Source: Tubulanus polymorphus
Taxonomy: Eukaryota; Animalia; Nemertea
Assembly: GCF_964204645.1 (NCBI RefSeq)
Contig: NC_134032.1
Span: forward strand, 15,550,275 to 15,614,274
DNA length: 64,000 bases
Direction: 5' to 3'
Position numbers and translations under genes: made by a program. Under the pieces are notes generated by a model, which saw nothing but the letters and a program-made list of their open reading frames with translations, was not told the DNA's origin and did no database searches. This document shows positions 12,633-45,569 of the stretch, one piece after another; positions within the stretch are counted from its first letter, which is position 1; every line of letters begins with the position of its first letter.

Positions 12633-15600
12633 ATGAGCTACGTCATGTACCGGAAGTTGTTATTGTTGACGTTGTCTGCGGCGTACTTGCTCGTCTGTTG
12701 CGCGACCGTTGTTGCCGGTGACTACGAGAATCCGATTGCCGACGAAGATGTAAGTTAAAAGAACCATTGTTGAATTTGTTAATTCGAACTCTGCCATGGT
12801 AACAGAAAATCCATAAACCGCAAGGGCTCGTATCAGAGTTTCTGGTACAGCCTGGATTTAACAGATTATATCATGCTTGCAGTAACAGCACCTCTGATAC
12901 GAGCCCTTGTGATACCAACCACATTTTCCAATTAGTAGAATTGGTTAATTAACACGTAGTTCCGGATTTTCTAATTAGTAAAAAACGGTTAACACGACGT
13001 TTTTGGATTATATTGCTCTCTACAATCAAAGAAATATTTAAACTACCGATTTAAACACGAACAAGACGCTTAGTCTCAGATTACAAGTGCTACATTTCAA
13101 GTTAATTACGAGCGAGTGTTTAATTACTAATCAACTATTTGATACGAACTAATCATTTGTAAATATTTTCCTCTATTGTTGCAATAATAAGAGCCGGCTT
13201 CAGCGGTTGTGTGAATTATCGCTAATGTTAGTGATATTTCGATCCGATAGATGGCGAACTAGTCGATGAGTGATCTGTGTATCCGTTCTTGTTTCAGTCT
13301 CAGTTGAGTGAATGTGATTTGAAGAACTACGTGTGCCGTACATTGATGAGAATATCGAGAGATGAAACAGATTCAGAAACGAGCGAAGATCAAGAGAATT
13401 GTAAATGTGAAATGTGTTCCTCGATTTGGGATGAATCCGACGGCTATTCCTTAACGTGGACCTCCTACGAAAGACGTAAGTTGAAGTCTTAAGATTTCAG
13501 AGATAACTCACTTACCAGGGCTTGGGATGGGGATTGTCATTGATTGACTTGACCAGTATCCAGTAAGAAGGGATTAAGAAAAATCCTTAGCCAGTGCCCA
13601 GTACATCAAACACCAGAGGCCAGTTCCAAACGTACCCTTAAATCTTAAAACTGGTCTTAAGTTGTTAGATTGGCTATAGAATCCAGTTGGTCTTAGACTG
13701 GTCATATAAGTCTAAGACAAAGACCAAAAGTTAGTTCTATAGAAAATCAAACAACTTAAGATCGGTCTTAAAGATTTAAAACCACGGACTTAAGTCACGA
13801 CTGTGAAACTGGCCCCAGTGACCAATTGCCCAAACATTGATTAAACAATGGATTCTGGAGTCCATGGTTAAAGTTTAGCGGTGGACAGTTCATTAAGTGA
13901 CAATTGAAATTGAATTGTTACTATTATTGTCGACCCGTTAATTCTAAAACAATGTTTGAACAACTGGCTCCTAAACGACACGAATATATATCGAACAAAA
14001 CGACTGTTATTGTTATATTCAAATTCTGAGGTCAAGTAAATATGATTCTTTTTCATTTGTTAGTCTTTGCTTATACAATATAACAATATACAAATACTTG
14101 AAAATACTGTGAAAATAATCTATACACACTATATGGCGCTCTGGCAGTCGAGGAATTCCAAAATTTAATCTATTTTTTGTTTATATCAGAGTTTCTGAAA
14201 TTCATTACATTTCATAAAGTTACATTTATACAACACAACAGCCACTGTAGATTCCTGACCTCTACTACAATGTAGTTATCTTCTGAAGAGTTTCTGATAT
14301 CTGTGACAAAGTCGTCATCTTATAGAGAGTTTCTGTGACAGTGTAGTCATCTTCTTGTAGCATTCCTGACATCTGAGCTTAGTCCATTGTTCCATTATCA
14401 TCTATATATCATAAAGAAAAGATAAGAAATAAATTCGAGCGTTGAGTTCATAATATAAGCGCGTAAATCCAGGAAAGGTTGCTTATGACAACCTAGGTTA
14501 GCATCCGCCCCTAAAACCCAACCTTACTTTTCCCTACAATAAAAACTTTAGAAAGGTTGGGTCCCGACCGCACCATCTCTCTGAGCCCACGGCTTACATA
14601 CATGTATCCGGCAATGTTTATGGGGGACCTCACTTTCTCTTTTGGTACTACATTATTTTTGTGTCGTGCCCTTCGCATCCACTAACCTAATTGTGGTCTT
14701 ATGCCATCTGGAACAATGTAGGTATCTTCTGGAGTGTTTCTGATATCTGGGACAACGTAGGTATCTTCTGGGGGGTTTCTGACACCTGCGACAACGACGT
14801 AATCATCTTCTGGAGGATTCCTGACACCTGCGACGATGTAGGTATCTTCTGTAGGGTTAGAGACACCTGCAAAAACGTAGGTATCTTCTGGAGGGTTCAT
14901 GACATCTGGGCCAACGTAGTCATCTTCTGGAGTGTTTCTGATATCTGGGACAACGTAGGTATCTTCTGGGGGGTTTCTGACACCTGCGACAACGACGTAA
15001 TCATCTTCTGGAGGGTTCCGGACACCTGCGACAATGTAGGTAACTTCTGTAGGGTTAGAGCCACCTGCAACAACGTAGGTATCTTCTGAAGAGTTTCTTG
15101 CATCTGGAACAACGTAGGTATCTTCTGGAGGGTTCCTGACACCTGGGACAACGACATAGTCATCTTCTGGGGGATTCCGGACACCTGCGACGATGTAGGT
15201 ATCTTCTGTAGAGTTCCTAACATCTGGGCCAACGTAGGTATCTTCTGGAGAGATCCTGTCGTCAGCTGAAGTAGTTGTTGGCTGAAAATAAATCGGTAAA
15301 CAATTAGGCCTAATAATATATTCGCAAATAAAAAAAATTGAAAACAATAGAAATGTATTATTTATATTGACAAACCTTAAGTGCAACAATGTAGGTATCT
15401 TCTGGAGGGTTCCGGACACCTGCGACAATGTAGGTATCTTCTGGAGGGTTCCGGACACCTGCGACAATGTAGGTATCTTCTGGAGGGTTCCGGACACCTG
15501 CGACAATGTAGGTATCTTCTGTAGAGTACCTAACATCTGGAACAACGTATTCATCTTCTGGAGGGTTTCTGACATCTGGGCCAACGTAGTCATCTTCTGG

Positions 15601-18600
15601 AGGGTTTCTGACATCTGCGACAAGGTTGTCATCTACGTCATCATCTGTAGAGTTCCATACATCTTCGTCATCATCTGTAGAGTTCCATACATCTACGTTA
15701 TCATCTGTAGCGCTCCTTACATCTACGTCATCATCTGTAGCGTTCCTAACAACTACGTCATTCTCTGCAACGTTCCTTACATCTACGTCATCATCTGTAA
15801 CGTTGCTGACACCTGCGACAACGACATCTACAATATCTACATCATCGTAGATTTCACCGTCATCTATGTCTTCGTAGATACCGTCCTGTGTTGTGTAGAT
15901 CCTACCACCAACTCCAGAAGACGAAGGCTGAAAATAAATCGGTTAAACAATTTACAAAATATTCACAAATAAAATAAAATTTAAAAAACAATGTTAATGT
16001 ATTTATATTTACAAACCTGATAGTACATTGCCCCTGGATCGGTCGTGTTGTTACCTATAAACAATAATAGAATGTTAGATAAAATATTACATGTATTTAT
16101 TCTTATTCAAAGAACTTCCTGTTCCCGAAATCAACAGTCAAAGTATATCCAGGAGCACTCAGTTCCATTGTTATCAAATCTAATTTAACTCAAATACCCC
16201 AAACAACCCTTTTACTCTAAAGTAAAACGATAAATTACAAACCAGTATTTCTGTTCCTCAAGATCCTTCGCTGTTTGAGCATTAAGACTGTAGCTATAGC
16301 AATCACTATTACTATAAACAGGAAACCGATCCCAATAACAACTGTCACAAAACTGCTTGTATCTGTATCTGTATCTGAAACACAGAGTATGAAACTCACC
16401 TATATCAAACAGTTTCAAATTACAGACTTAAGTTTATATATTTCATTTCTACTATCTTTATCTTAAGTTTATATATTATATGTTCAACCATTTATCGTTA
16501 AGCTACCTTTAACTTGTATGACCCGCCATAGAAGTATAAACCCAGCACCGCTCCTAGAGTTGTCTGATGTGAACTGTATTCTAATATTTCCAGTGTAGGA
16601 TCGATTACCTGGAGCAGCCGACCCGCAATACTGATAACTCCCTGATGAAGAAATAAAACTGATAAAACTTTATGAATCATGAAAATCATTCACGTTGCAA
16701 AGAGTGTTTAGATTTTTACCCGTTTCATTTTTTATCGTCAACGCGTCAGAGCAACTACCGTTACTATTGGGCTGTACTTGAAAATTCGAGTCAAATGATA
16801 TTTCATGAATCTGCAAAAAGTGTATAAATTCAGCGGTGAATATAATTCAAATGTCAACAGTTATCAGTTAAGAACTGAACCCCTGAGCCCGGTTACATTT
16901 AAATTCTAATTAGGTGATAATTCAAATTAAAAATGGTTAATTCGAGTTTGTTAATTCGATGGTTAAATCGGTTTCACAAATGAGAATTAACAAAAATTAA
17001 CTGATTCAAATTAACTCCAAAGTTAATTCCAAATTAGCTTCCCATAATGCATTAGTATTATAACAAAAACAAAGTATCTTTTATAAAGTTCCCCTGTCGC
17101 TAAGTATCTTAAGATGTTTTGGTGGTACGGGGAAATTTAATTGTTCGTATCCAGGTTTAAGTTAAAACTGAATTTAGCCCCAATTGAGCTCCTACTTGTG
17201 CGGAAAACCCAACAACATTACTTTTCTCATAGACCAAATATTTACCGTGTTTCCAGGTACTGCAATTAACCATCTACAGTCCAGATTGTGGTAGTAGTTT
17301 TCCGGGTAGTTAGGGCTGGATATGACGCCTGATCTACCATTCTGTATTATAGGTGTTTTACTACATGAATCAACTACAAATAAATATTGAATTGAATTGT
17401 TTTATATGTAATTTACTGATTCCATGATAAACTTCTCATTATGAGCTACCTTTCAAATGCCGCCAAAAGAGTTTAAACCCTATCCCGCTCTCAGAGGACG
17501 CGTCTGATCTAAACTGGATGATTACACGACCGGAATAGACACGTGTAGGTGGCGCTGTATAGTTGCAATATTCATTTACTGTAAAGATACCAAGACACAA
17601 ATCAATGACATATTTTTAGCTGGATTTGCAAACGTCTATCAGAAGCAGCCACACCGCAATATTCAATACTCCCTGATGAAAAAAAATAAATCTGATAAAA
17701 CTTTATATCATAAAAATCATTCACGTTGTGAAGAGTGTTTAGATTTTTACCTGATTCACTTTTTATCGTCAACGCGTCATAGCAACGACCTTTACTTGTC
17801 TGTATATGAAAATTCGAGTGAAATGATATTTCAACCACCTGCAAAAATATGAATTCAGGGGTGAATATTATTAAAATGTCAACAATCGTCTACAGAATGT
17901 AATATACCCGTTTATATAGATCAGTTTAAACGGTCAGTTCAGGACTAAACCCCTGAGCCCGGTTAACTTTAAATTCGAATTAGGTGATAATTCAAATTAA
18001 AAATGGTTAATTCGAGTAAGTTAATTCGATTACAATTAATCAAATTCAAATTATCTCCAAAGTTGATTCCAAATTAGCTTCCCATAATGTATATTTGTCC
18101 TATAACATCAACAGAGTTTCATTTATCAAGTTCCTCTGTCGCTATATCTCTTTAGATGTTTTGGTGGTACGGGGAAATTTAATAATGTTCGTTTCCAGGT
18201 TTAAGTTAAAACTGAATTTAGCCCCAATTGAGCTCCTACTTGTGCGGAAAACCCGACAAAATTATTTTCATCATAGACCACCAAATATTTACCGTATTTT
18301 CAGGTGTTTGGATTAACCATCTACAGTCCAGTCTGCGGTAGTAGTTGTTCGGATGGTTAGGGCTGGTTATGACGCCTGATGTACCATTCTGTATTATAGG
18401 TGTTTTACTACACAGCCGCGAGTCAACTACTAATAAATATTGAATTGAATTGTTTTATATGTAATTTACTGATTCTATGATAAACTTCTCACTAATGACC
18501 TACCTTTCAAATACCGCCACAACAGTTTAAACCCACTGTAGCTGATAGAGCTGTCTGATTTAAACTTGATGATTACACGACCGAAATAGTAACGTGTAGG

Positions 18601-21600
18601 TGGCGCTGTATTGCCACAATATACATTCACTGTAAGAATAAACACACAAATTAATGATATATTTTCTATCTGGATTTGAAAACACAAATCTATCAGTAGC
18701 AGCCACACCGCAATATTCAATACTCCTTGATGATGAAATCAACCTTATCTGAAACTTCATGAATCATAAAATCATTCACGTTATGAAGAGTGTTTAGATT
18801 TTTACCAGTTTCACTTTTTATCGTCAACGCGTCATAGCAACCACCATAGCCTCCGAATAAACGAAACTTCGAGTCGAATGATATTTCAACCATCTGTAAA
18901 AATATATGAATATTCAGCATTTAATTAAAGTATAACAGTGAACATGTATGTATTGTTTACAGGATGTAGGACCCGATATATACAGAGTGTCTCAGAAAAT
19001 GTGATACACAATTCATTAACTATTACATGTAATTATTTTCTTAGGGGGGGGGGGAGAATCTGATGAGTCAAAATTCTACGATGAAACGTCGATCTCAAGT
19101 GTGCAAACAGTTACCATATTGAACAAATCTGGAGCAGCTTAATTTGTAAAGAGGACCAACAATTTTATTCAGGAGAAATTTGTCTTAGTTAATCTAATCG
19201 TCATGTCTCAAATCATGTCATATTTGAGCAAGCGGAAATAACGACTGTTTAATTTTTAACGACTCGTTTAACAATTTAACGACTGTTGATGACTTAAGGC
19301 AGGCGTCGCGACTCAAGGCCGACTTACGCGCTCCTGCGACTATCTAGTAATACCGGGATTCGAGCCCACAGTGGTAATGAGATGCGTTTTGAAGTAATTC
19401 TATTGAAGGCTTCATAGAATTTCTTATCGAGAATTTAGGTCTCCATTTGTATTCATGCTGCTTCGCTCAAAAAGACCAGCGTCCAGTTCCGCAGTTGTGA
19501 GTTTACCCGGGCTTAGGTCGGCCTTGCGACAGCTTGTGACTCACTGCGACCGCCAGCGACGATCGCGTCGCAACGACTCACCGACCTACGCTACCTTGCG
19601 ACTGCCAGCGACGCCAGTCACAATGAGTCGCACATGTTCTACTTTCTGCGACACGACACGACCGTCGCAACCGACCTGCGCTACCTTGCGACTGGCAGCA
19701 ACTAGTCGCACACAGTCGCTGACAATCGCGTCGCAACCGACTTACGCCCCCACATGTGACGCAACGCGACGATCGCGTCGCGTCGCTAGGTCGACCTACG
19801 CCCGGCTTAAACAATATGCGTTTTTCTCATAGTCCAAATATTTACCGTGTTTTCAGGAGCTACAATCTCCCATCTACAGTACAGGTTATAACCATAGTTG
19901 CCCGGGTGGTTAGGGCTGGTTATGACGCCTGATGTACCATTCTGTATTCTAGGTGTTGCACTACAAGTCGAGTCAACTGCAAATAAATATTAGATTTATT
20001 GTTTTATATGTAATTTACTGATTCTATGATAAACTTCTCACTAATGAGCTACGTACCTTTCGAATACCGCCAAACGAGTTTAAACCCTTTGTAGCTACTA
20101 GAGTTGTCTGATCTAAACTGGATGATTACACGACCGGAATAGACACGTGTAGGTGGCGTTGTATAGCCGCAATATTCATTTACTGTAAATATAAACACAC
20201 AAATCAATGATAGATTTTCAGTAGCAGCCACACCCTGTAGCCAATAATCCCTGATAAAGAAACAAATCCGATAATTCAAAAAAATATCTTAGCAGCCACA
20301 CCGCAATATTCAATACTTCCTGATGAAGAAATAAATCTGATAAAACTTTATCTATCATAAAAATCATTCACGTTATGAAGAGTGTTTAGATTTTTACCGG
20401 TTTCACTTTTTATCGTCAACGCGTCATAGCAATGACTGCTACCGCGACGTTTGGGCTCTATTTGAAAATGCGAGTCAAATGATATTTCAACCACCTGCAA
20501 AAATATATGATTTCAGTGGTGAATATTTTTCCAATGTCAACAATCGTCTACAGAATGTAATATACCCGTTTATATAGATCAGTTTTAACTTTAACCCGGA
20601 GTTATCAGTTCAGAGCTAAACGCCTGATTGTACGATATCCTGTACACTCAAAAGTGGTGAATGGATAATAAGATAAAAACCCACTATTTACAAATTAAAA
20701 TAATTTTAAAGTGGAGAATTAATTTATTCAAAAAATACAAAAGACACAACGTTTCGATCACACCCTAGAGATCATCGTCAGGTGACGATGACCGTGGCGA
20801 GACCATTTGTACATAGTCATAGTGGGTTTATCATAGAACAAATATTTACCGTATTTTCAGGTGTTTGGATTAACCATCTACAGTCCAGTCTGGTGTAGTA
20901 GCCGTTCGGGTAGTTAGGGCTGGATATGACGCCTGATGTACCATTCTGTATTATAGGTGTTTTACTACATGAATCAACTACAAATACATATTGAATTGAA
21001 TTGTTTTATATGTAATTTACTGAATCCATGATAAACTTCTCATTATGAGCTACCTTTCACAAACCACCACAACAGTTTAAACCCTTTATGGTAGCTACTA
21101 GAATTGTCTGATCTAAACTGGATGTCTACCTCACCGGAATAGTAGCGTGTAGGTGGCGCTGTATTGCCACAATATACATTTGCTGTAAAGATAAACGCAC
21201 AAATCAATGATATATTCTTAGTTATTTCTGACATAATAAATCGCAGATATTTCTTCATTCATTCGTTTAACATCGAGTCTTAAATAGAATGATTCGATTC
21301 TTACTGGAATAGCCGACGTATATGTATAATGTGTCGCGGTAGCAATAACCACTAGATGTATTTGAATCCACTTCGAAAATAGGATCAAACGATATTTCTA
21401 ATATCTGAAATTAAAATTAGTCACGTGGTTATTTTATTATTGTTCAAATATTTCTGCTACATTCTAACTGCTAGTTGTCATTAAGGGTTACCCCTGTTTA
21501 TAATATGTGATGTAATGTAATAGTTAAACAGTTCAGCACCCGATTTGGTGCTGGTTCCAGTGGAGATATAAATTCCACACTTTTTACAATAGTAAAATTT

Positions 21601-24600
21601 TAATCAGTCCAAATTGGACTGATAAAAATATTTTTGATTATATTTCTAGTTTTCCTAACAGTGAAAGTTTTTCTAGTTTTCCAACCGTGAATATATTTCA
21701 GAACTTCTTGTATTTTATATTTACCATGTTTTGAGGTGTATCAATCCGCCATCTACAGAACAGATTGTCGCCATAGTTACCCGGGTAGTTAGGACTGGTT
21801 ATGACGCCAGAAGTTCCGTTCTGTATTCTACCTGGCCACCAGCGGCTACAACTCGAGTCGATGTCATCTGTCAATACTGTATAGAAAAATACCCGTAGAT
21901 CTATAAACTTATAAAGCGGTAGTTAGTAGGACTAACTCAACTGATAATGAATTTAGTTAGCCTTCGGGTCGAGGTTAATACCAGTCTATAAAAAAGAGAA
22001 CTGGTCATCAGTTCCCACACCACATTGATCACCAGGTCACCACAACTGACTAGTCATCAGTCACCATAACTAAATAGTCACAACACTGACCAGACAAAAA
22101 ATCAGTCATCGCTTTATGGTATAGTGGTTAGAGTGATCGCCCGGTTATCGTGAGGTCACGGGTTCGAGGCTGAGGTTAGGCTTGTTAACATCCTCTAGCT
22201 AGGTGCTGATGCTAAGTTCCCGGGATAAAAAATATCTTTTGATTTTGATTAATGAAATATGTTTTTAATCTTTTAAATCATGTATATTGTGGTTTTTAAA
22301 CCTATTGTCAATTCTCCTAACGTCAGTTTGACCGGTGCGATTCTACCAATAGGTAGTTGCTGTTTTGAGAAAATGTATTCATTTTTTGAAATAAACAACT
22401 GTCCTTGAAACGAGTTCCGGAACAACGCGTCATACTGGCCGTTTAGTGAGGTAATAAAGTGACCGTTTGAGACCATTAGTTTAGAGAGTTCCTCAGATTG
22501 GCACCCGCACCGCGGCATTGATCAAACAGTTCTAACCTATGTGACGGCACTGATCTCAATAATTTAACTCTAAAATTCATCTACATCAACAAATTTAATC
22601 AGTATTAAGTGATATTGATATTATTTGCGCGCTTACCTTGAGAATTCTCGACGAATAAAATTACAGCGACCACAAACAAACTCTTCATCATCAACTCCAT
22701 ATTCAAACAGATACTCGCGATAAATACTCAACAACTGAACTGTGAACTACTACCAAAAGACTGCGCCTTTTCACAGAGACCGATACGATCAGCTTTATGA
22801 ATCAGAAAACTGAGTTGGTCTTTAAATAGTAATTTCATTTCCTTGTTTCAATCTAGAAACGATAAGAATCGCTGTTGTCACTCCGCCAGCATCATCATCA
22901 TTTATCATCATTATATGTTCATGTAAATACTGGCTTTATTTAGAGAATTATTAAGGATTAAATTGTCTCTCCATCATCACACTCAGTGTAACACAAATAG
23001 ATAAAGCCAAAAAACCACATAAACAGGATCTTCCTTATGTACCTTTGATAAAGTTAATGGACGATGAATAGAATCAAAACTTCGAAGTAAAGAAAACTGC
23101 ATTTTAGATAATAGTTTAATTTCCTTAATTATCTCTCTGATTTATGGTATAATCACCAGGATAATTATCTGCCCATCAGGAAACACAGACACTGGTGCTG
23201 CGGGATATTTATTTATAAACTGATAAATCAAACTTTTAAATAAAAACCAATATTTCGATGACTTCACTATCAAACGTCGCGTGTCAATCTCACAATAAAA
23301 AACCCGAAATAAAACAAGGAAATACAAGTCTAAATTACTCCGAACATTCAGTTTTACATTAAGGGTTTGACATATATGTTGGTTTTATTTCTATGATACG
23401 TAAAGACAATAATTCAGTTTTCTCCTAAATACCATTCAGTTCAGTTGTTATCAACACGGTAATTACTGTTTGAAGTTTTTAGTGCGTTTTTGATATTTCT
23501 AAAATTTTTCATCGCGTCTTTAACATTGTTTTATTCCTATGATAGAATGTTAAGACAAAAATAGTTAACTGATTTACGGTGGATAGTGGTAGATTTGACT
23601 ACTTGTCTCATAAGTACAGCTCCATTACTCCGATGTAGCTGCTTTGTACTAATAGCGAAAGCTACATAATTTACCCGCGGAAGCTACTAATTAAGGCCAG
23701 TCAAATCAACTATGGAACTAAGTTGTTCTTAGATATTGATTATACCCTGGAGCCAGTTGCATAGTCGTGACTTAAGTCCAAAAGTGGTCTTAAATCTTAA
23801 GACTGGTTATATTAGCTACAGAACTAAGTTGGTCTTAGACTGGTCTTAAGTCTAAGCCATGACTATGCAACCAGCCCTGGTTGCACAGTCGTGGCTAAAA
23901 GTCCAAAAGTGGTCTTAAATCTTAAGACTGATCTTAACTTGTTAGTTTGGCTATAGATCCAATTTGGTCGTAGACTGGTCTTGTCTAAGCCCTGACTGTG
24001 CAAACAGATCCCAGGTTAACCAACAGCTCATCCAAAACTAAGCTAGTGAAAGTCTACATCTCGTTGAATCGACTCCGGAATTTTCCACTCTTCCAGGTGA
24101 CCAACAGTTTCAATACAAATTCTGTTCAAACATCACAAACACGCGACAGTGCCAGAACGAAACCATCGCTGCTCAGCTAATTACCGATGTGAAACGTTGG
24201 AATCCACGAATGGACGCGGTATTCTGTCGGTGTCCACGTGACGAGTATTGGTTGGACGGATGGAGACGAGACAATGGAGTCTGGAGTTACATTTACACCT
24301 GTTATAAGGTATTATCATATATACAGTCATTTATTATATCTAAGCAACGTTTCGGCATAGGGACTATAAGCCATCATCTGGCGTAAAATGAATTAACAAG
24401 ATTTGAGCCTGATGATTATGGCTTATAGTCTTAAGCCGAAAACGTCGCTCAAATATATAAACCTTTTACTCAATAATTTTACACTGTTGGCTGAATTATT
24501 GTAAGATCTACGTGTAGTGGTAAAAGTGCAGATCTGCACCTCTCCGCGTAAACGGTTCAATCAATTACATTAAATATCATTGTTTCAGATTCAAAATGTC

Positions 24601-27439: not shown

Positions 27440-30400
27440 CCGATGAGTTCACCAGACAGCTTCTCACAGGGGGTAGATTCTGCAGAGCTTGGAGGATGTT
27501 GAGTTCACCAAACAGTGTCTCACTGGAGGTAGATCCTGCAGCACTTGGATGTTGAGTTCACCAGACAGTGTCTCACTGGGGGTAGATTCTGCAGCACTTG
27601 GATGTTGAGTTCACCAGACAGTGTCTCACTGGGGGTAGATTCTGCAGCACTTGGATGTTGAGTTCACCAGACAGTGTCTCACTGGGGGTAGATTCTGCAG
27701 CACTTGGATGTTGAGTTCACCAGACAGTGTCTCACTGGGGGTAGATTCTGCAGCACTTGGATGTTGAGTTCACCAGACAGTGTCTCACTGGGGGTAGATT
27801 CTGCAGCACTTGGATGTTGAGTTCACCAGACAGTGTCTCACTGGGAGTAGATTCTGCAGCACTTGGATGTTGAGTTCACCAGACAGCGTCTCACTGGGAG
27901 TAGATGATCTCAGCGTGAATGATAGAAAAATAATGAAAAGAAATACATGTTAGAATATATTCATACAGTAGACAGAGTAAGGTTTAACTGCTTTGTGGTA
28001 AAAACATGTGCTTCAAATCAGGAATTATTTGTTCCTGAATCTCTTGTGTCAAATGATACATGTATTTCAAAGTGTGACAGTCCAGCTCGCATGTTTGAGT
28101 TCATTTCCACGAAATACATTACATGATGAGGCTGCTATTTAGAATTGAATCACATAAAATACTCAATTATTTCACCAGCTGATTTGTCCATTAAAACCTA
28201 GGAATTTCGAATATATTTCTAAGATGCCAAATTCCTCGTCTAAGCTAAACTCGCCCCTAGTGGTTTATAAAGACGACCGACACCTCTTTCTTTCTTTCTT
28301 TCTTTCTGTTTACTCTTTTTTTGCGCCCGTGAATTATGCTTAAACATGTTCGAGGTGATTTTTTCAAACTGTTTTAAGGTGCGTCCCCGCAGACAACTGA
28401 GGCTAGGATAGAAATGTCCGTATCTCTTGATGCACATGACTACCTTATCGAGTAAGTGATCATACACACGATACTCCCAGAGTCCGCGGTTCAGTAAAGG
28501 AGCGTCCGATGCCCTCATGCTATCGTCCTCCCCGGGTGGCCTTTCGCCATCCCTGTCACCGAGCATATTCACTTTAAGGGCTACCACCCCCCTTACCGCC
28601 ACCACTATTTTTCTTCCCGCCGTCTCGCAAAGACAGAAACGAGTTTAACTCAGAAAAGGAAGAACCCGAATGGATTCAATTTGATTTATACGTGTGGTCA
28701 GGTTTGGGTTCGGATCCCGAGGCACCGAGCACAGTGTATTTCAATGTGACCATTTTGTCACCTTGCGTCGCTGATTCAGAATAAGTTGCCAAAGTGAGAT
28801 TAGAAATAAATCAGCGATTTAAATCATTTAGAAATCAACAAATAAAAAATCTGGATTTCATGAATCCAATGAAAACCAATTCTAGACTTCGTGATTGAAC
28901 AAATGAATTTTGACAGTTATTACATAAGAAAAAGGTTTAGAAATATTGAGCCATTTGACAACCACACATTGAATCATGTATTTAATCAGAAATCACTCAA
29001 AACAGTCAAAAGTTCTCATCGACAACTGGTCAAATTGTTATCTTTACTTCACATCTATAGAATTTGAGGTTTTCAAAATCAAGGAGAATTCAAACCTCTG
29101 AAAAAATTCATATCAGCAATTTTTAGGTGTAATTTATCATTGCTTACCTTCTGTAGCGCATGGATGTCAAATTTATCAGTCTCACACAGATCATCTCCTT
29201 GGATGTTGAGTTCACCAGACAGTGTCTCACTGGGGGTAGATTCTGCAGCACTTGGATGTTGAGTTTACCAGACAGTGTCTCACTGGGGGTAGATTCTGCA
29301 GCACTTGGATGTTGAGTTCACCAGACAGTTTCTCACTGGAGGTAGATCCTGCAGCACTTGGATGTTGAGTTCACCAGACAGTGTCTCACTGGGGGTAGAT
29401 TCTGCAGCACTTGGATGTTGAGTTCACCAGACAGTGTCTCACTGGGGGTAGATTCTGCAGCACTTGGATGTTGAGTTCACCAGACAGTGTCTCACTGGGG
29501 GTAGATTCTGCAGCACTTGGATGTTGAGTTCACCAGACAGTGTCTCACTGGGGGTAGATTCTGCAGCACTTGGATGTTGAGTTCACCAGACAGTGTCTCA
29601 CTGGGGGTAGATTCTGCAGCACTTGGATGTTGAGTTCACCAGACAGTGTCTCACTGGGGGTAGATTCTGCAGCACTTGGATGTTGAGTTCACCAGACAGT
29701 GTCTCACTGGGGGTAGATTCTGCAGCACTTGGATGTTGAGTTCACCAGACAGTGTCTCACTGGGAGTAGATTCTGCAGCACTTGGATGTTGAGTTCACCA
29801 GACAGCGTCTCACTGGGAGTAGATGATCTCAGCGTGAATGATAGAAAAATAATGAAAAGAAATACATGTTAGAATATATTCATACAGTAGACAGAGTAAG
29901 GTTTAACTGCTTTGTGGTAAAAACATGTGCTTCAAATCAGGAATTATTTGTTCCTGAATCTCTTGTGTCAAATGATACATGTATTTCAAAGTGTGACAGT
30001 CCAGCTCGCATGTTTGAGTTCATTTCCACGAAATACATTACATGATGAGGCTGCTATTTAGAATTGAATCACATAAAATACTCAATTATTTCACCAGCTG
30101 ATTTGTCCATTAAAACCTAGGAATTTCGAATATATTTCTAAGATGCCAAATTCCTCGTCTAAGCTAAACTCGCCCCTAGTGGTTTATAAAGACGACCGAC
30201 ACCTCTTTCTTTCTTTCTTTCTTTCTGTTTACTCTTTTTTTGCGCCCGTGAATTATGCTTAAACATGTTCGAGGTGATTTTTTCAAACTGTTTTAAGGTG
30301 CGTCCCCGCAGACAACTGAGGCTAGGATAGAAATGTCCGTATCTCTTGATGCACATGACTACCTTATCGAGTAAGTGATCATACACACGATACTCCCAGA

Positions 30401-31335
30401 GTCCGCGGTTCAGTAAAGGAGCGTCCGATGCCCTCATGCTATCGTCCTCCCCGGGTGGCCTTTCGCCATCCCTGTCACCGAGCATATTCACTTTAAGGGC
30501 TACCACCCCCCTTACCGCCACCACTATTTTTCTTCCCGCCGTCTCGCAAAGACAGAAACGAGTTTAACTCAGAAAAGGAAGAACCCGAATGGATTCAATT
30601 TGATTTATACGTGTGGTCAGGTTTGGGTTCGGATCCCGAGGCACCGAGCACAGTGTATTTCAATGTGACCATTTTGTCACCTTGCGTCGCTGATTCAGAA
30701 TAAGTTGCCAAAGTGAGATTAGAAATAAATCAGCGATTTAAATCATTTAGAAATCAACAAATAAAAAATCTGGATTTCATGAATCCAATGAAAACCAATT
30801 CTAGACTTCGTGATTGAACAAATGAATTTTGACAGTTATTACATAAGAAAAAGGTTTAGAAATATTGAGCCATTTGACAACCACACATTGAATCATGTAT
30901 TTAATCAGAAATCACTCAAAACAGTCAAAAGTTCTCATCGACAACTGGTCAAATTGTTATCTTTACTTCACATCTATAGAATTTGAGGTTTTCAAAATCA
31001 AGGAGAATTCAAACCTCTGAAAAAATTCATATCAGCAATTTTTAGGTGTAATTTATCATTGCTTACCTTCTGTAGCGCATGGATGTCAAATTTATCAGTC
31101 TCACACAGATCATCTCCTTGGATGTTGAGTTCACCAGACAGTGTCTCACTGGGGGTAGATTCTGCAGCACTTGGATGTTGAGTTTACCAGACAGTGTCTC
31201 ACTGGGGGTAGATTCTGCAGCACTTGGATGTTGAGTTCACCAGACAGTTTCTCACTGGGAGTAGATTCTGCAACACTTGGATGTTGAGTTCACCAGACAG
31301 TGTCTCACTGGGGGTAGATTCTGCAGCACTTGGAT
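27440..31335. repeat. 1919-bp near-identical tandem duplication plus three blocks of a 53-bp minisatellite
   Basis: Unique segment ~27897-29198 is repeated at ~29816-31117 (identical ORFs at 28240 and 30159). The 53-bp unit TTGGATGTTGAGTTCACCAGACAGTGTCTCACTGGGGGTAGATTCTGCAGCAC occurs at ~27445-27903, 29199-29822 and 31118-31335. Confidence 0.95.
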
Positions 31336-31629
31336 AGTTTAACCCTGGGCTGAAGGCTGTAAAGGTAAAATTCCACGATTGAAATATCTAGTAAATCTCA
31401 TGATTTTATCCAATTTCACCGCATACATGCTCACCAGATCTGGAGTCAGCTTATAGGTCTTGGCTGTGGATTAGCGCTTAGTTCAGGCAATATCAACAAC
31501 TGAAATGTGAAAACAGACATTGCTTATATTCCAATTATTTCTCAAGATTTAAAGATGATTTCTATCCTGCACTCATGCTGAGTCAAAAAACATTTTTACA
31601 TTAGACACTCGTGAGACTCACGAGTGGCT

Positions 31630-44010: not shown

Positions 44011-44874
44011 GATCTGATGTTGAAACTAATTTTCAAACAGATGCCAGAATTAATTGATAAAGATGCAGCAGTGGTGAGCTGTGAATGGTGCTAAAGATGC
44101 AGAAGTGGTGAAGTGTGAATGGTGTAGTGCAGGTGCAAGTCGGCGCCTTGTGCAATAAATACGTGAAGTGAAGATGTGCATGAATCAACTTTCTTCTGGC
44201 ATCTTTCCAACAGCAGCATTTACCAAATTATAGATCACCTAATCAATATTAAGAGGATGAGCAATTTTCAAGATGAGAGTCTCTAGTGAGACCGAGCGTC
44301 TTTCAAGATTTTTAAATCGCTTTTAAACCCTTGAAATTCATAATTACTAATAATCTCTTTATATCAACGATAGTGAATCCTAACTTTCCTTGCAACAGTT
44401 ATATTCCTAGAATATTTTGATTGAATTTGATGTATATACCAATAGATATGCAATTGATTCAAGGTGGAAACAATTGATCTCGTTTAACACCAATGGGGTG
44501 TAGGTTTTCACCAGCTAAAAGCTGTTTTTGTAGCAGCATTTTGAGAGTTGATATTTGGCAGTCTCGGAGCAGCATTTTGAGAGTTGATATTTGGCAGTCT
44601 CTGAGCAGCATTTTGAGAGTTGATATTTGGCAGTCTCTGAGCAGCATTAACAAAACCGAGCCTGCGCCACATGGTTATTCTTTGTTATATGTGAGATGTA
44701 TTTCGATAGTTGCGATTACACACAACGATCTGCGTAAATATAAAACTGAAACGACAAAGAAAATGACAAATGAATAATAATGTCGAAGTAAATTCATTCA
44801 ATCGTTATAACAAATATGTAAAATAAGTAATTTCATACAGTAACAGCATAATTACCTGATTTGCATTGATTCGA

Positions 44875-45455
44875 TCTGATGAGAAGCTGTTGATGTTTAA
44901 CAAGGAGCTGTTGATGGATGACAGTGAGGAGCTGTTGACAAGGAGTTGTTGATGTTTAACAAGCTGTAGTGTGACGAGGAGCTGTTGATTTCCGATGAGG
45001 AGCTGTTGTGTGACGTGGAGCTGTTGAGTGACGAGGAGCTGTTGTGTGACGAGGAGCTGTTGTGTGACGAGGAGCTGTTGTGTGACGAGGAGCTGTTGAT
45101 TTTTGATGAGCTGTTGATTTCCGATGCGGAGCTGTAGTGTGACGAGGAGCTGTTGATTTCCGATGAGGAGCTGTTGATTTCCGATGCGGAGCTGTTGTCT
45201 GACGAGGAGCTGTTGATTTCCGATGAGGAGCTGTTGATTTCCGATGAGGAGCTGTAGTGTGACGAGGAGCTGTTGATTTCCGATGAGGAGCTGTTGATTT
45301 CCGATGAGGAGCTGTTGATTTCCGATGAGGAGCTGTAGTGTGACGAGGAGCTGTTGATTTCCGATGAGGAGCTGTAGTGTGACGAGGAGCTGTTGATTTT
45401 TGATGAGGAGCTGTTGATTTCCGATGAGGAGCCGTTGTTTGACGAGTCGTTGTAG
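44875..45455. repeat. 18/21-bp minisatellite, open on the minus strand (RKSTAP/RHTTAP or SSSEIN readings)
   Basis: Units GAGGAGCTGTTGATTTCCGAT and GAGGAGCTGTAGTGTGAC; coding status unresolved. Confidence 0.85.
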
Positions 45456-45569
45456 AGTTCTTCAAAAACATACATAACGGCGACCAATATGTGACCAAAG
45501 TTCAATTTTTATTAATCATTATTTATCAATTATTTTATATTTTAATTTTGCAGTGCGTTAATCTTACAA

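Follow-up and report, generated by a model that had tools for sequence, protein, structure and literature searches.

A tandem array of acidic tyrosine motifs in the tail of a Tubulanus polymorphus CUB receptor, a candidate phosphotyrosine docking platform

Background

Non-catalytic tyrosine-phosphorylated receptors are a recognised functional class, in which the tyrosines are phosphorylated by cytoplasmic (Src-family) kinases on triggering (PMC11399299). We analysed a 64,000-nucleotide stretch of the genome of the palaeonemertean ribbon worm Tubulanus polymorphus (NC_134032.1, positions 15,550,275 to 15,614,274; henceforth the window), in which the last four coding exons of a receptor gene with a tail of tandem tyrosine repeats occupy positions 14379-16054 on the minus strand. 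The RefSeq product of this gene (P0054, 1062 amino acids (aa), named ‘cubilin-like’) is a transmembrane (TM) receptor without a catalytic domain, as that class is defined (PMC11399299).

This kind of receptor is already known, and the closest precedents, DCBLD1/2 and CDCP1, had been missed by the initial annotation of the window. DCBLD1 and DCBLD2 (ESDN) are non-catalytic CUB scaffold receptors of vertebrates whose intracellular part has 7-8 YxxP motifs; Fyn and Abl phosphorylate these motifs, which bind the Src homology 2 (SH2) domain of CRKL (PMC6029619). The Tubulanus protein resembles them in being a predicted type I, non-catalytic receptor with a CUB ectodomain and a disordered multi-tyrosine tail, in which nine YxxP motifs occur. 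However, DCBLD proteins have LCCL and discoidin domains, whereas P0054 has only CUB-clan matches and no similarity to them in the tail. Moreover, the Tubulanus motifs are near-identical tandem minisatellite units with an E-D-x-Y-[V/I] core, and most are not YxxP. CDCP1 has only CUB domains outside the membrane, followed by a TM helix and a short tail that is non-catalytic and in which the tyrosines are Src-family substrates and docking sites. P0054 matches the CDCP1_CUB_6 profile (PF23665, 44 bits), but this match is partial (profile positions 10-59 of 115) and lies under a generic CUB match. CDCP1 also has five scattered tyrosines, no repeats and no similarity in the tail.

Other comparable systems are not CUB receptors. 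In p130Cas (BCAR1), a separate kinase-docking phosphotyrosine (pTyr) site adjoins the tyrosine array, and the motifs IYEDI and IYDDV next to the Tubulanus array may parallel this site. The p130Cas substrate domain is disordered and contains 15 YxxP pseudo-repeats with conserved spacing, which are phosphorylated by Src-family kinases and recruit Crk and Nck (PMC3983058). p130Cas is, however, a cytosolic Src homology 3 (SH3) adaptor with neither TM helix nor ectodomain, and its repeats are degenerate, whereas those of Tubulanus are almost identical to each other and much more acidic. LAT and nephrin have membrane-anchored, disordered, acidic multi-pTyr tails (3-9 sites) that drive condensates. 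The YVNT sites of some Tubulanus paralogs are similar to the YxN Grb2/Gads sites of LAT, and IYDDV is similar to the YDxV Nck sites of nephrin, but LAT and nephrin have no tandem-repeat organisation and no homology to the Tubulanus tail. EPIYA-type effectors (CagA, Tarp, AnkA, Beps) are secreted bacterial mimics of host sites that use tandem tyrosine motifs as multivalent SH2 docking arrays; they differ in their motif (E-P-I-Y-A) and bacterial origin and have no homology to the Tubulanus tail. A weak match in our searches, P0008 (476 aa, on a 2.08-Mb contig), has four tandem repeats of ~76 aa with the tyrosine motifs EDDYTDM, EYVDM, TYQNV, PAYAEV and IYEDP. Its appearance is that of a bacterial protein of the EPIYA type, with phosphotyrosine mimics in tandem; it is an analogue and not a relative.

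The RefSeq names point to two further proteins. Cubilin is peripheral, with 8 EGF and 27 CUB domains and no TM helix, whereas P0054 has no EGF match, five CUB domains, a TM helix and a 414-aa tail. Neuropilin (2 CUB, 2 FA58C and a MAM domain, short tail) also differs, and neither FA58C nor MAM was found in P0054 or in the paralog P0037, which RefSeq labels ‘neuropilin-1-like’. Judged by domain content, ‘cubilin-like’ and ‘neuropilin-1-like’ are mislabels resting on CUB similarity. By the same comparisons, the family is not a member of the DCBLD, CDCP1 or p130Cas groups, as it lacks LCCL and discoidin domains beside the CUBs, shares no homology in the tail and has no relatives in other species. 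The likeness of the receptor to DCBLD1/2, CDCP1 and p130Cas is one of analogy, not of homology.

Multivalent pTyr tails (LAT, nephrin, p130Cas, DCBLD) are central to ideas on signal amplification and membrane condensates, and their natural examples have 3-15 degenerate sites. What is new here is the scale (20-34 sites), the near-identical tandem organisation derived from a coding minisatellite, and an exon cassette present on two ectodomain classes. The family thus provides a natural allelic and paralogous valency series of 10-34 near-identical sites, carried by a modular cassette on different ectodomains.

Results and discussion

Architecture and topology of the receptor

Whole-protein analyses used the database protein P0054 as the reference. 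It consists of a signal peptide, five CUB domains, a TM helix and the 414-aa tail, which contains 26 tyrosines. The CUB profile (PF00431) matches five stretches (253 bits, E 3.7e-76, above the gathering score; 28-29 bits on single exons), and a Pfam search of the tail detected no domain, catalytic or other. This agrees with the initial annotation, which had described five CUB domains and a tail of ~400 aa with about 26 tyrosines and no catalytic domain. The TM helix spans residues 628-648 (Kyte-Doolittle maximum 3.10) and is directly followed by KQRRILRNRN. Because the signal peptide is N-terminal, the CUB domains precede the single TM helix and basic residues follow it, the sequence identifies the protein as type I and non-catalytic, with the repeats on the cytoplasmic side.

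AlphaFold2, run with 11 family sequences, predicted five beta-rich modules and a helix at residues 622-655. Residues 656-1062 were modelled without secondary structure (pLDDT, the predicted local distance difference test, 20-28). In a charge-hydropathy plot the tail falls in the disordered region and the ectodomain in the folded one; Asp and Glu make up 22.5% of the tail, which has a net charge of -65. The tail is therefore predicted to be disordered and to lack a catalytic domain. A beta-solenoid-type fold of the 13-aa unit was considered and found no support from AlphaFold2 (alignment of only 11 rows), and structural look-alikes from the ESM Atlas scored at chance level (0.76-0.78).

Tyrosine is not enriched in the tail (6.3%, vs 6.7% of the ectodomain). 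The non-random features are the strict 13-14-residue periodicity of the tyrosines and their invariant context, not tyrosine content.

The tandem tyrosine array

Tandem Repeats Finder (TRF) detected two arrays. One, at 14713-15623, has a 39-bp period (score 552, 23 copies) and higher-order periods of 81, 120, 159 and 198 bp; the other, at 15630-15811, has a 30-bp period. The translation contains 20 tyrosine units, 17 of 13 aa and three of 14 aa, of which six are encoded by repeat exon A and 14 by repeat exon B. The unit core, E-D-x-Y-[V/I], is invariant. In exon B the units form a five-unit higher-order repeat, and units B8 and B13 are 100% identical. Exon A also encodes six acidic 10-aa units without tyrosine (VRNxTDDDVD). 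These are preceded by RIYTTQDGIYEDIDDGEIYDDVDIVDVV, identical in each of the 11 CUB-type sequences of our alignment.

The residues after the tyrosine vary: YIVA occurs seven times, YVVP four times, YVVV and YVGP three times each, and YIVP, YVFA and YVVA once each. Eight of the 20 units are thus YxxP (YVVP ×4, YVGP ×3, YIVP ×1), and 11 match pY-[VIL]-x-[VILP]. Between the membrane and the array lie IYEDI (P0054 residues 690-694) and IYDDV (residues 699-703), and [IV]YEDI is found in all nine tails of the family. All the repeat features that the initial annotation had listed were recovered, namely the 20 units of 13-14 aa, the eight YxxP of three types, IYEDI and IYDDV.

We searched for other tyrosine-based motifs. 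The immunoreceptor tyrosine-based activation motif (ITAM; Yxx[LI]-x(6-8)-Yxx[LI]) had no match in the nine tails, the nearest arrangement being YEDI-x5-YDDV. The patterns of the immunoreceptor tyrosine-based inhibitory and switch motifs (ITIM and ITSM; [SIVL]xYxx[IVL] and TxYxx[VI]) had no match in P0054, where position -2 is Asp. The tryptic peptide of the unit, NPPEDTYIVAGVR, would be ideal for phosphoproteomics.

Selection on the repeat units

Units were detected with a position-specific scoring matrix (PSSM) in a scan that left out the column being assessed, which yielded 154 units, six of them of the 10-aa type without tyrosine. A first census made with HMMER and a full-length domain filter had retrieved only 70 units, and its detection itself used the tyrosine; it was replaced by the PSSM scan. 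The tyrosine is retained in 146 of the 148 true units, the exceptions being one Y-to-D and one Y-to-F replacement. Phe takes the place of Tyr in only one of 148 units, and yet a single step leads from TAC to TTC; the pattern argues that the hydroxyl matters.

The codon analysis was restricted to 133 high-scoring units. We computed nonsynonymous and synonymous diversity (piN and piS) for each of the 13 columns, whose piN/piS ranges from 0.03 to about 2. The lowest ratio, 0.03, belongs to the tyrosine column (TAC 122, TAT 9; piS 0.38, piN 0.011). The initial annotation had proposed comparing the tyrosine codon with its neighbours, and by piN/piS it is the most constrained. Intermediate ratios were obtained for columns -7, -6, +1 and +2 (0.24-0.41; 0.34-0.41 for +1 and +2), and columns -8, -5, -1, +3 and +4 are above 1. 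We detected no frameshift or stop in the arrays of the nine genes (>150 units). These sequence comparisons support purifying selection on the tyrosine, while positions -1, +3 and +4 vary freely.

A 12-nt core, GAA-GAT-ACC-TAC (units at 14687-15927), has almost no synonymous variation over >130 units and eight loci; the neighbouring codons vary.

Proposed phosphotyrosine docking and alternative explanations

We consider it probable, rather than assured, that the protein is a non-catalytic scaffold receptor whose tail becomes phosphorylated at many tyrosines and docks SH2 proteins. In such a receptor, ligand-driven clustering of the CUB ectodomain would let a cytoplasmic tyrosine kinase phosphorylate the array. 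This kinase would probably be acid-tolerant, and the conserved pYEDI site may be its first docking point, in the way that Src docks on p130Cas: IYEDI resembles a Src-type SH2 ligand and could prime processive phosphorylation as in p130Cas. The many pTyr sites would then recruit SH2 proteins multivalently, and the genome has at least about 30 SH2 loci. The variable positions +1 to +3 (YIVA, YVVP, YVGP and YVVV, and the Grb2-type YxN site YVNT in FN3-type paralogs) could choose the SH2 partners. Among the known classes, pY-[VIL]-x-[VILP] is of the PLC-gamma/SHP2 type, YxxP of the Crk/Abl type and YxN of the Grb2 type. Valency may have been tuned in evolution by slippage of units (39/42 nt) and by duplication of a phase-symmetric exon with its intron.

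Several observations weigh against this reading. Most tyrosine kinases prefer an aliphatic residue at -1, and acidophilic kinases exist (PMC11136658); the -1 residue of the units is T, D or E, not aliphatic. The acidic context that led the initial annotation to Src-family kinases is present, but because of the -1 residue a Src-family assignment is not implied by the sequence. Its reading of the YxxP motifs as a Crk/Nck-recruiting array was likewise over-specific, since only eight of the 20 units are YxxP and nine have Ala at +3, which fits the well-known SH2 classes poorly; a Crk/Nck assignment is speculative. At the DNA level, the codons of Glu(-3) and Asp(-2) hardly vary, not even synonymously (GAA in 132 of 133 units, GAT in 129 of 133). 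Part of the conservation may therefore reside in DNA or RNA and add to protein selection, the candidates being a gene conversion tract and a purine-rich splicing enhancer within exons that are unusually long. The units are also non-independent (recent duplication, higher-order repeats), which inflates apparent conservation, and gene conversion among them is likely. The databases confine the family to one species, so that no deep conservation supports a function. Finally, the run in which we observed splicing (X4, described below) is not recorded as RNA, and its RNA nature was deduced from the joints.

A tail that acts independently of phosphorylation is the first alternative. Its tyrosines would be aromatic contacts, either as stickers for self-association or condensates or in a tail that binds basic or cytoskeletal partners or cations or serves as an entropic spacer. 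We regard this as unlikely. It would account for the predicted disorder, the net charge of -65, the regular sticker-spacer pattern and the constraint on the hydrophobic +1 and +2 positions (piN/piS 0.34-0.41). It would not account for the single Phe in 148 units, nor for a set of features that are classic pTyr signatures: acidic residues at -2/-3, a hydrophobic +1, the pYEEI-like IYEDI and the YVNT units.

Also to be considered is an endocytic or sorting tail of a scavenger-type (‘cubilin-like’) receptor, in which tyrosine and acidic-cluster signals would bind clathrin adaptors and CUB-bound ligands would be taken up. Sorting needs one or two signals, and the 20-34 copies would be left unexplained. 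The tail does have five Yxx[LIMFV] matches and many acidic clusters, and CUB arrays are typical of endocytic ligand binders. However, a bulky hydrophobic +3 residue is found in only three of the 20 repeat units, the others having A or P, and NPxY and NxxY had no matches (Asn is at -6 from the tyrosine). The protein itself is not cubilin, as it has a TM helix and no EGF repeats. An endocytic role for the array is distinctly unlikely.

We also considered whether the array is a coding minisatellite of no functional consequence: a 39-bp repeat prone to slippage would have expanded in a disordered tail that tolerates it, and recent amplification and gene conversion alone would explain its uniformity. 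The higher-order repeats with their 100% identical units, the GAA-GAT codons that are invariant even at synonymous sites, the 39-nt skip variants in all four sequencing runs and the relic units in the 3' untranslated region (UTR) are what would be expected under neutrality. Neutrality is nevertheless quite improbable: piN/piS differs by column from 0.03 to about 2 within the same units, the frame is intact over nine genes (>150 units), the repeat is not dispersed elsewhere in the genome, and the cassette is reused on a second ectodomain class with 70% DNA identity and E-D-x-Y kept.

The opposite membrane topology was named by the initial annotation as a possible refutation. Extracellular or lumenal units, which would be tyrosine-sulfated or N-glycosylated at NxS/T, are extremely implausible, because the signal peptide, the disulfide-rich CUBs N-terminal to the single TM helix and KQRRILRNRN directly after it place the tail in the cytoplasm, although acidic residues near the tyrosines are a sulfation context for tyrosylprotein sulfotransferase (TPST) and the tail has eight NxS/T sequons.

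Paralogs and a portable cassette

The genome contains nine genes of this family. Six are CUB-type and lie on contig C8 of the assembly, at 11.92, 14.87, 15.10, 15.56 (the gene studied here), 15.87 and 16.28 Mb; they encode 2-8 CUBs and tails of 219-609 aa with 15-39 tyrosines. The other three are FN3-type genes in tandem on contig C2 at 4.37-4.39 Mb (C2:4372000-4394500). They have an FN3 and discoidin-like ectodomain, a different TM helix and a 204-aa tail in which EDDYVNT alternates with EDTYVVA, with five YVNT (YxN) sites each. RefSeq names the FN3-type proteins ‘receptor-type tyrosine-protein phosphatase delta/Lar-like’, yet no Pfam phosphatase domain was found in them.

Both types share a cassette composed of a 38-nt micro-exon, a homologous intron and one or more repeat exons. 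The FN3-type micro-exon is also 38 nt long and has its donor and the start of the following intron (GTTTGTAAATATAAATACAT) in common with the CUB-type one; the intron before the repeat exon can be aligned. The FN3-type cassette has 70% DNA identity, with E-D-x-Y intact. Within the studied gene, the intron before exon B and the intron before exon A (15928-16016), aligned with their flanks, have about 82% column identity, so the phase-symmetric repeat exon was duplicated together with its intron. The paralog at 14.87 Mb has three phase-symmetric repeat exons.

A genome-wide DNA search located the 39-bp repeat only at the family loci, in two tiny fragments and in relics past the stop codons of the studied gene and four C8 paralogs, which ruled out a dispersed satellite. 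To the extent of the databases searched, the family is also restricted to this species. An exhaustive profile-free search with exon B against 1.84 billion representatives returned 31 matches, of which the strong ones are all Tubulanus polymorphus RefSeq proteins, and a word-index search with a paralog tail returned seven clusters, all from Tubulanus polymorphus. The weak matches outside Tubulanus (P0004, P0007-P0031) were rejected as unrelated repeat proteins without TM or CUB, together with one bacterial-looking Tyr-repeat protein. The initial annotation did not recognise the architecture as a described family, and this stands: no relatives were found outside the species, and RefSeq names such as ‘cubilin-like’ are automatic.

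We put forward, tentatively and as a possibility that we would not expect to hold in full, a broader reading. The micro-exon and phase-symmetric repeat exons would form a portable phosphotyrosine-array cassette that evolved in this nemertean lineage and was shuffled onto two or more unrelated ectodomains, with slippage of units and duplication of exon plus intron tuning its valency to 10-34 sites. The cassette would be the basis of immune-type recognition receptors that evolved independently and signal by extreme multivalency, possibly with condensates. No transmembrane receptor would then be known to have a larger tandem pTyr array. The family also illustrates a concrete genomic route by which a signalling scaffold can be built and tuned, through a minisatellite in coding sequence, an exon of symmetric phase and an intron duplicated along with it. 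For Nemertea, whose receptors have hardly been studied, it provides a first candidate for a recognition-receptor family specific to one lineage.

Gene model and transcript evidence

We compared the four public runs that contain the stretch over 13900-19899; none of these runs is recorded as RNA. In one of them, X4, contigs skip 15928-16016, 15282-15375 and 14402-14686, in each case with CT..AC ends on the plus strand, which correspond to GT..AG on the minus strand. Another X4 contig (record 29) links the last CUB exon (16642-16507) to the TM exon. Given these joints at GT..AG, X4 contains spliced transcripts of the minus strand, in which the tail exons are joined in the tyrosine frame. The contigs give no level, tissue, strand or 3' end. 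The initial annotation had regarded transcripts that stop or shift frame before 15927 as fatal to its proposal; the X4 joints keep the tyrosine frame. The RefSeq model of P0054 is identical to the window exons, to each of which the protein aligns, and the ectodomain exons map at 95-100%. Its C-terminus, ...GIRPQLDDNGTMD, is the same as that predicted from the spliced model. Spliced contigs, P0054, hydropathy, Pfam and AlphaFold thus uphold the gene model, frame, type I topology and amplified tyrosine array proposed initially.

All exons are on the minus strand. The first coding exon (22638..22700) encodes the signal peptide (P0054 residues 1-21); it was placed by a 100% tblastn match of residues 1-21 of P0054/P0032, and AlphaFold predicts a helix at residues 2-18. 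The ectodomain (16507..21877) has five CUB domains, each split into three exons, as shown by Pfam CUB matches on single exons, by P0054 and by the spliced contig from 16642-16507 to the TM exon. The TM exon (16243..16374) encodes an acidic DTDTDT linker, the TM helix and the basic KQRRILRNRN stop-transfer sequence, and ends in a phase-1 donor; it is supported by sequence reading, hydropathy, AlphaFold and the X4 contig to CUB5.

The unspliced translation has two long repeat-bearing blocks in different frames, with a stop-filled stretch between them. A direct splice from the TM exon to exon A was rejected, as it meets a stop in both possible phases. This is resolved by a 38-nt micro-exon (16017..16054, phase 1 to 0), which encodes GNNTTDPGAMYYQ, is the first part of the tail cassette and was placed by phase logic and by the joint 15927/16017 (depth 557 in X4). 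Repeat exon A (15376..15927, 552 nt, phase 0 to 0) is delimited by the joints 15927/16017 and 15281/15376. It contains a conserved RIYTTQDGIYEDIDDGEIYDDV segment, the six 10-aa acidic units without tyrosine (15630-15811) and six tyrosine units (15379-15612). The intron between the repeat exons (15282..15375, 94 nt), a copy of the intron preceding exon A, is skipped in an X4 contig with CT..AC ends. Repeat exon B (15281 to 14687, i.e. 14687..15281; 595 nt, phase 0 to 1), with its 14 tyrosine units and five-unit higher-order repeat, is delimited by the joints 15281/15376 and 14401/14687. The terminal coding exon (14379..14401) finishes the protein with ...QL-DDNGTMD and includes the stop codon; it rests on the joint 14401/14687 (CT..AC, depth 474) and on the identical P0054 C-terminus. 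The exon phases are mutually consistent across the junctions read. The limits given in the initial annotation turned out to be exact exon limits: 16054 is the first base of the micro-exon, 15927 the first base of exon A and 14379 the last base of the stop codon.

The coding sequence is directly followed by two decayed repeat units (14267..14375, minus strand), a 3' UTR relic of a longer array that was recognised by sequence reading and by a DNA match to exon B (75% identity). One of the units can still be read intact in a different frame (DIRNSSEDNYIVVEVRN); the other carries a frameshift. Similar relics past the stop codon of four C8 paralogs were found by DNA search. The ancestral array was thus longer and was cut by the present terminal exon.

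Two kinds of variant joint were observed in the contigs. At 15161-15204, some contigs in all four runs skip exactly 39 nt (one unit) with non-canonical ends. The cause may be a copy-number allele that keeps the frame, cross-mapping of a contig from a paralog, or collapse during assembly. X4 contigs also join distant CUB exons (16642-18808, 16805-18293 and 17373-18504), and the ends of one of these joints are CT..AC. Such contigs could come from isoforms in which one or more CUB modules are missing, or could be chimeras assembled across near-identical CUB exons or paralogs.

Other features of the window

An intron of the CUB region contains a very high-copy element (19500-19899), where the summed contig depth is about 20,000 in X1, vs tens to hundreds elsewhere. 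A long 53-bp tandem array at 27467-31387 (minus-strand frames) is open in all frames, with the unit ...STPSETLSGELNIQVLQNLPPVRHCLVNSTSKCCRIYPQ. It sits within a duplicated segment of about 1.9 kb, and the open reading frames at 28243-28644 and 30162-30563 are identical. Outside the receptor gene, a serine-rich minisatellite at 44808-45508 is open in three frames (SSSEINSSSSHYSSS...).

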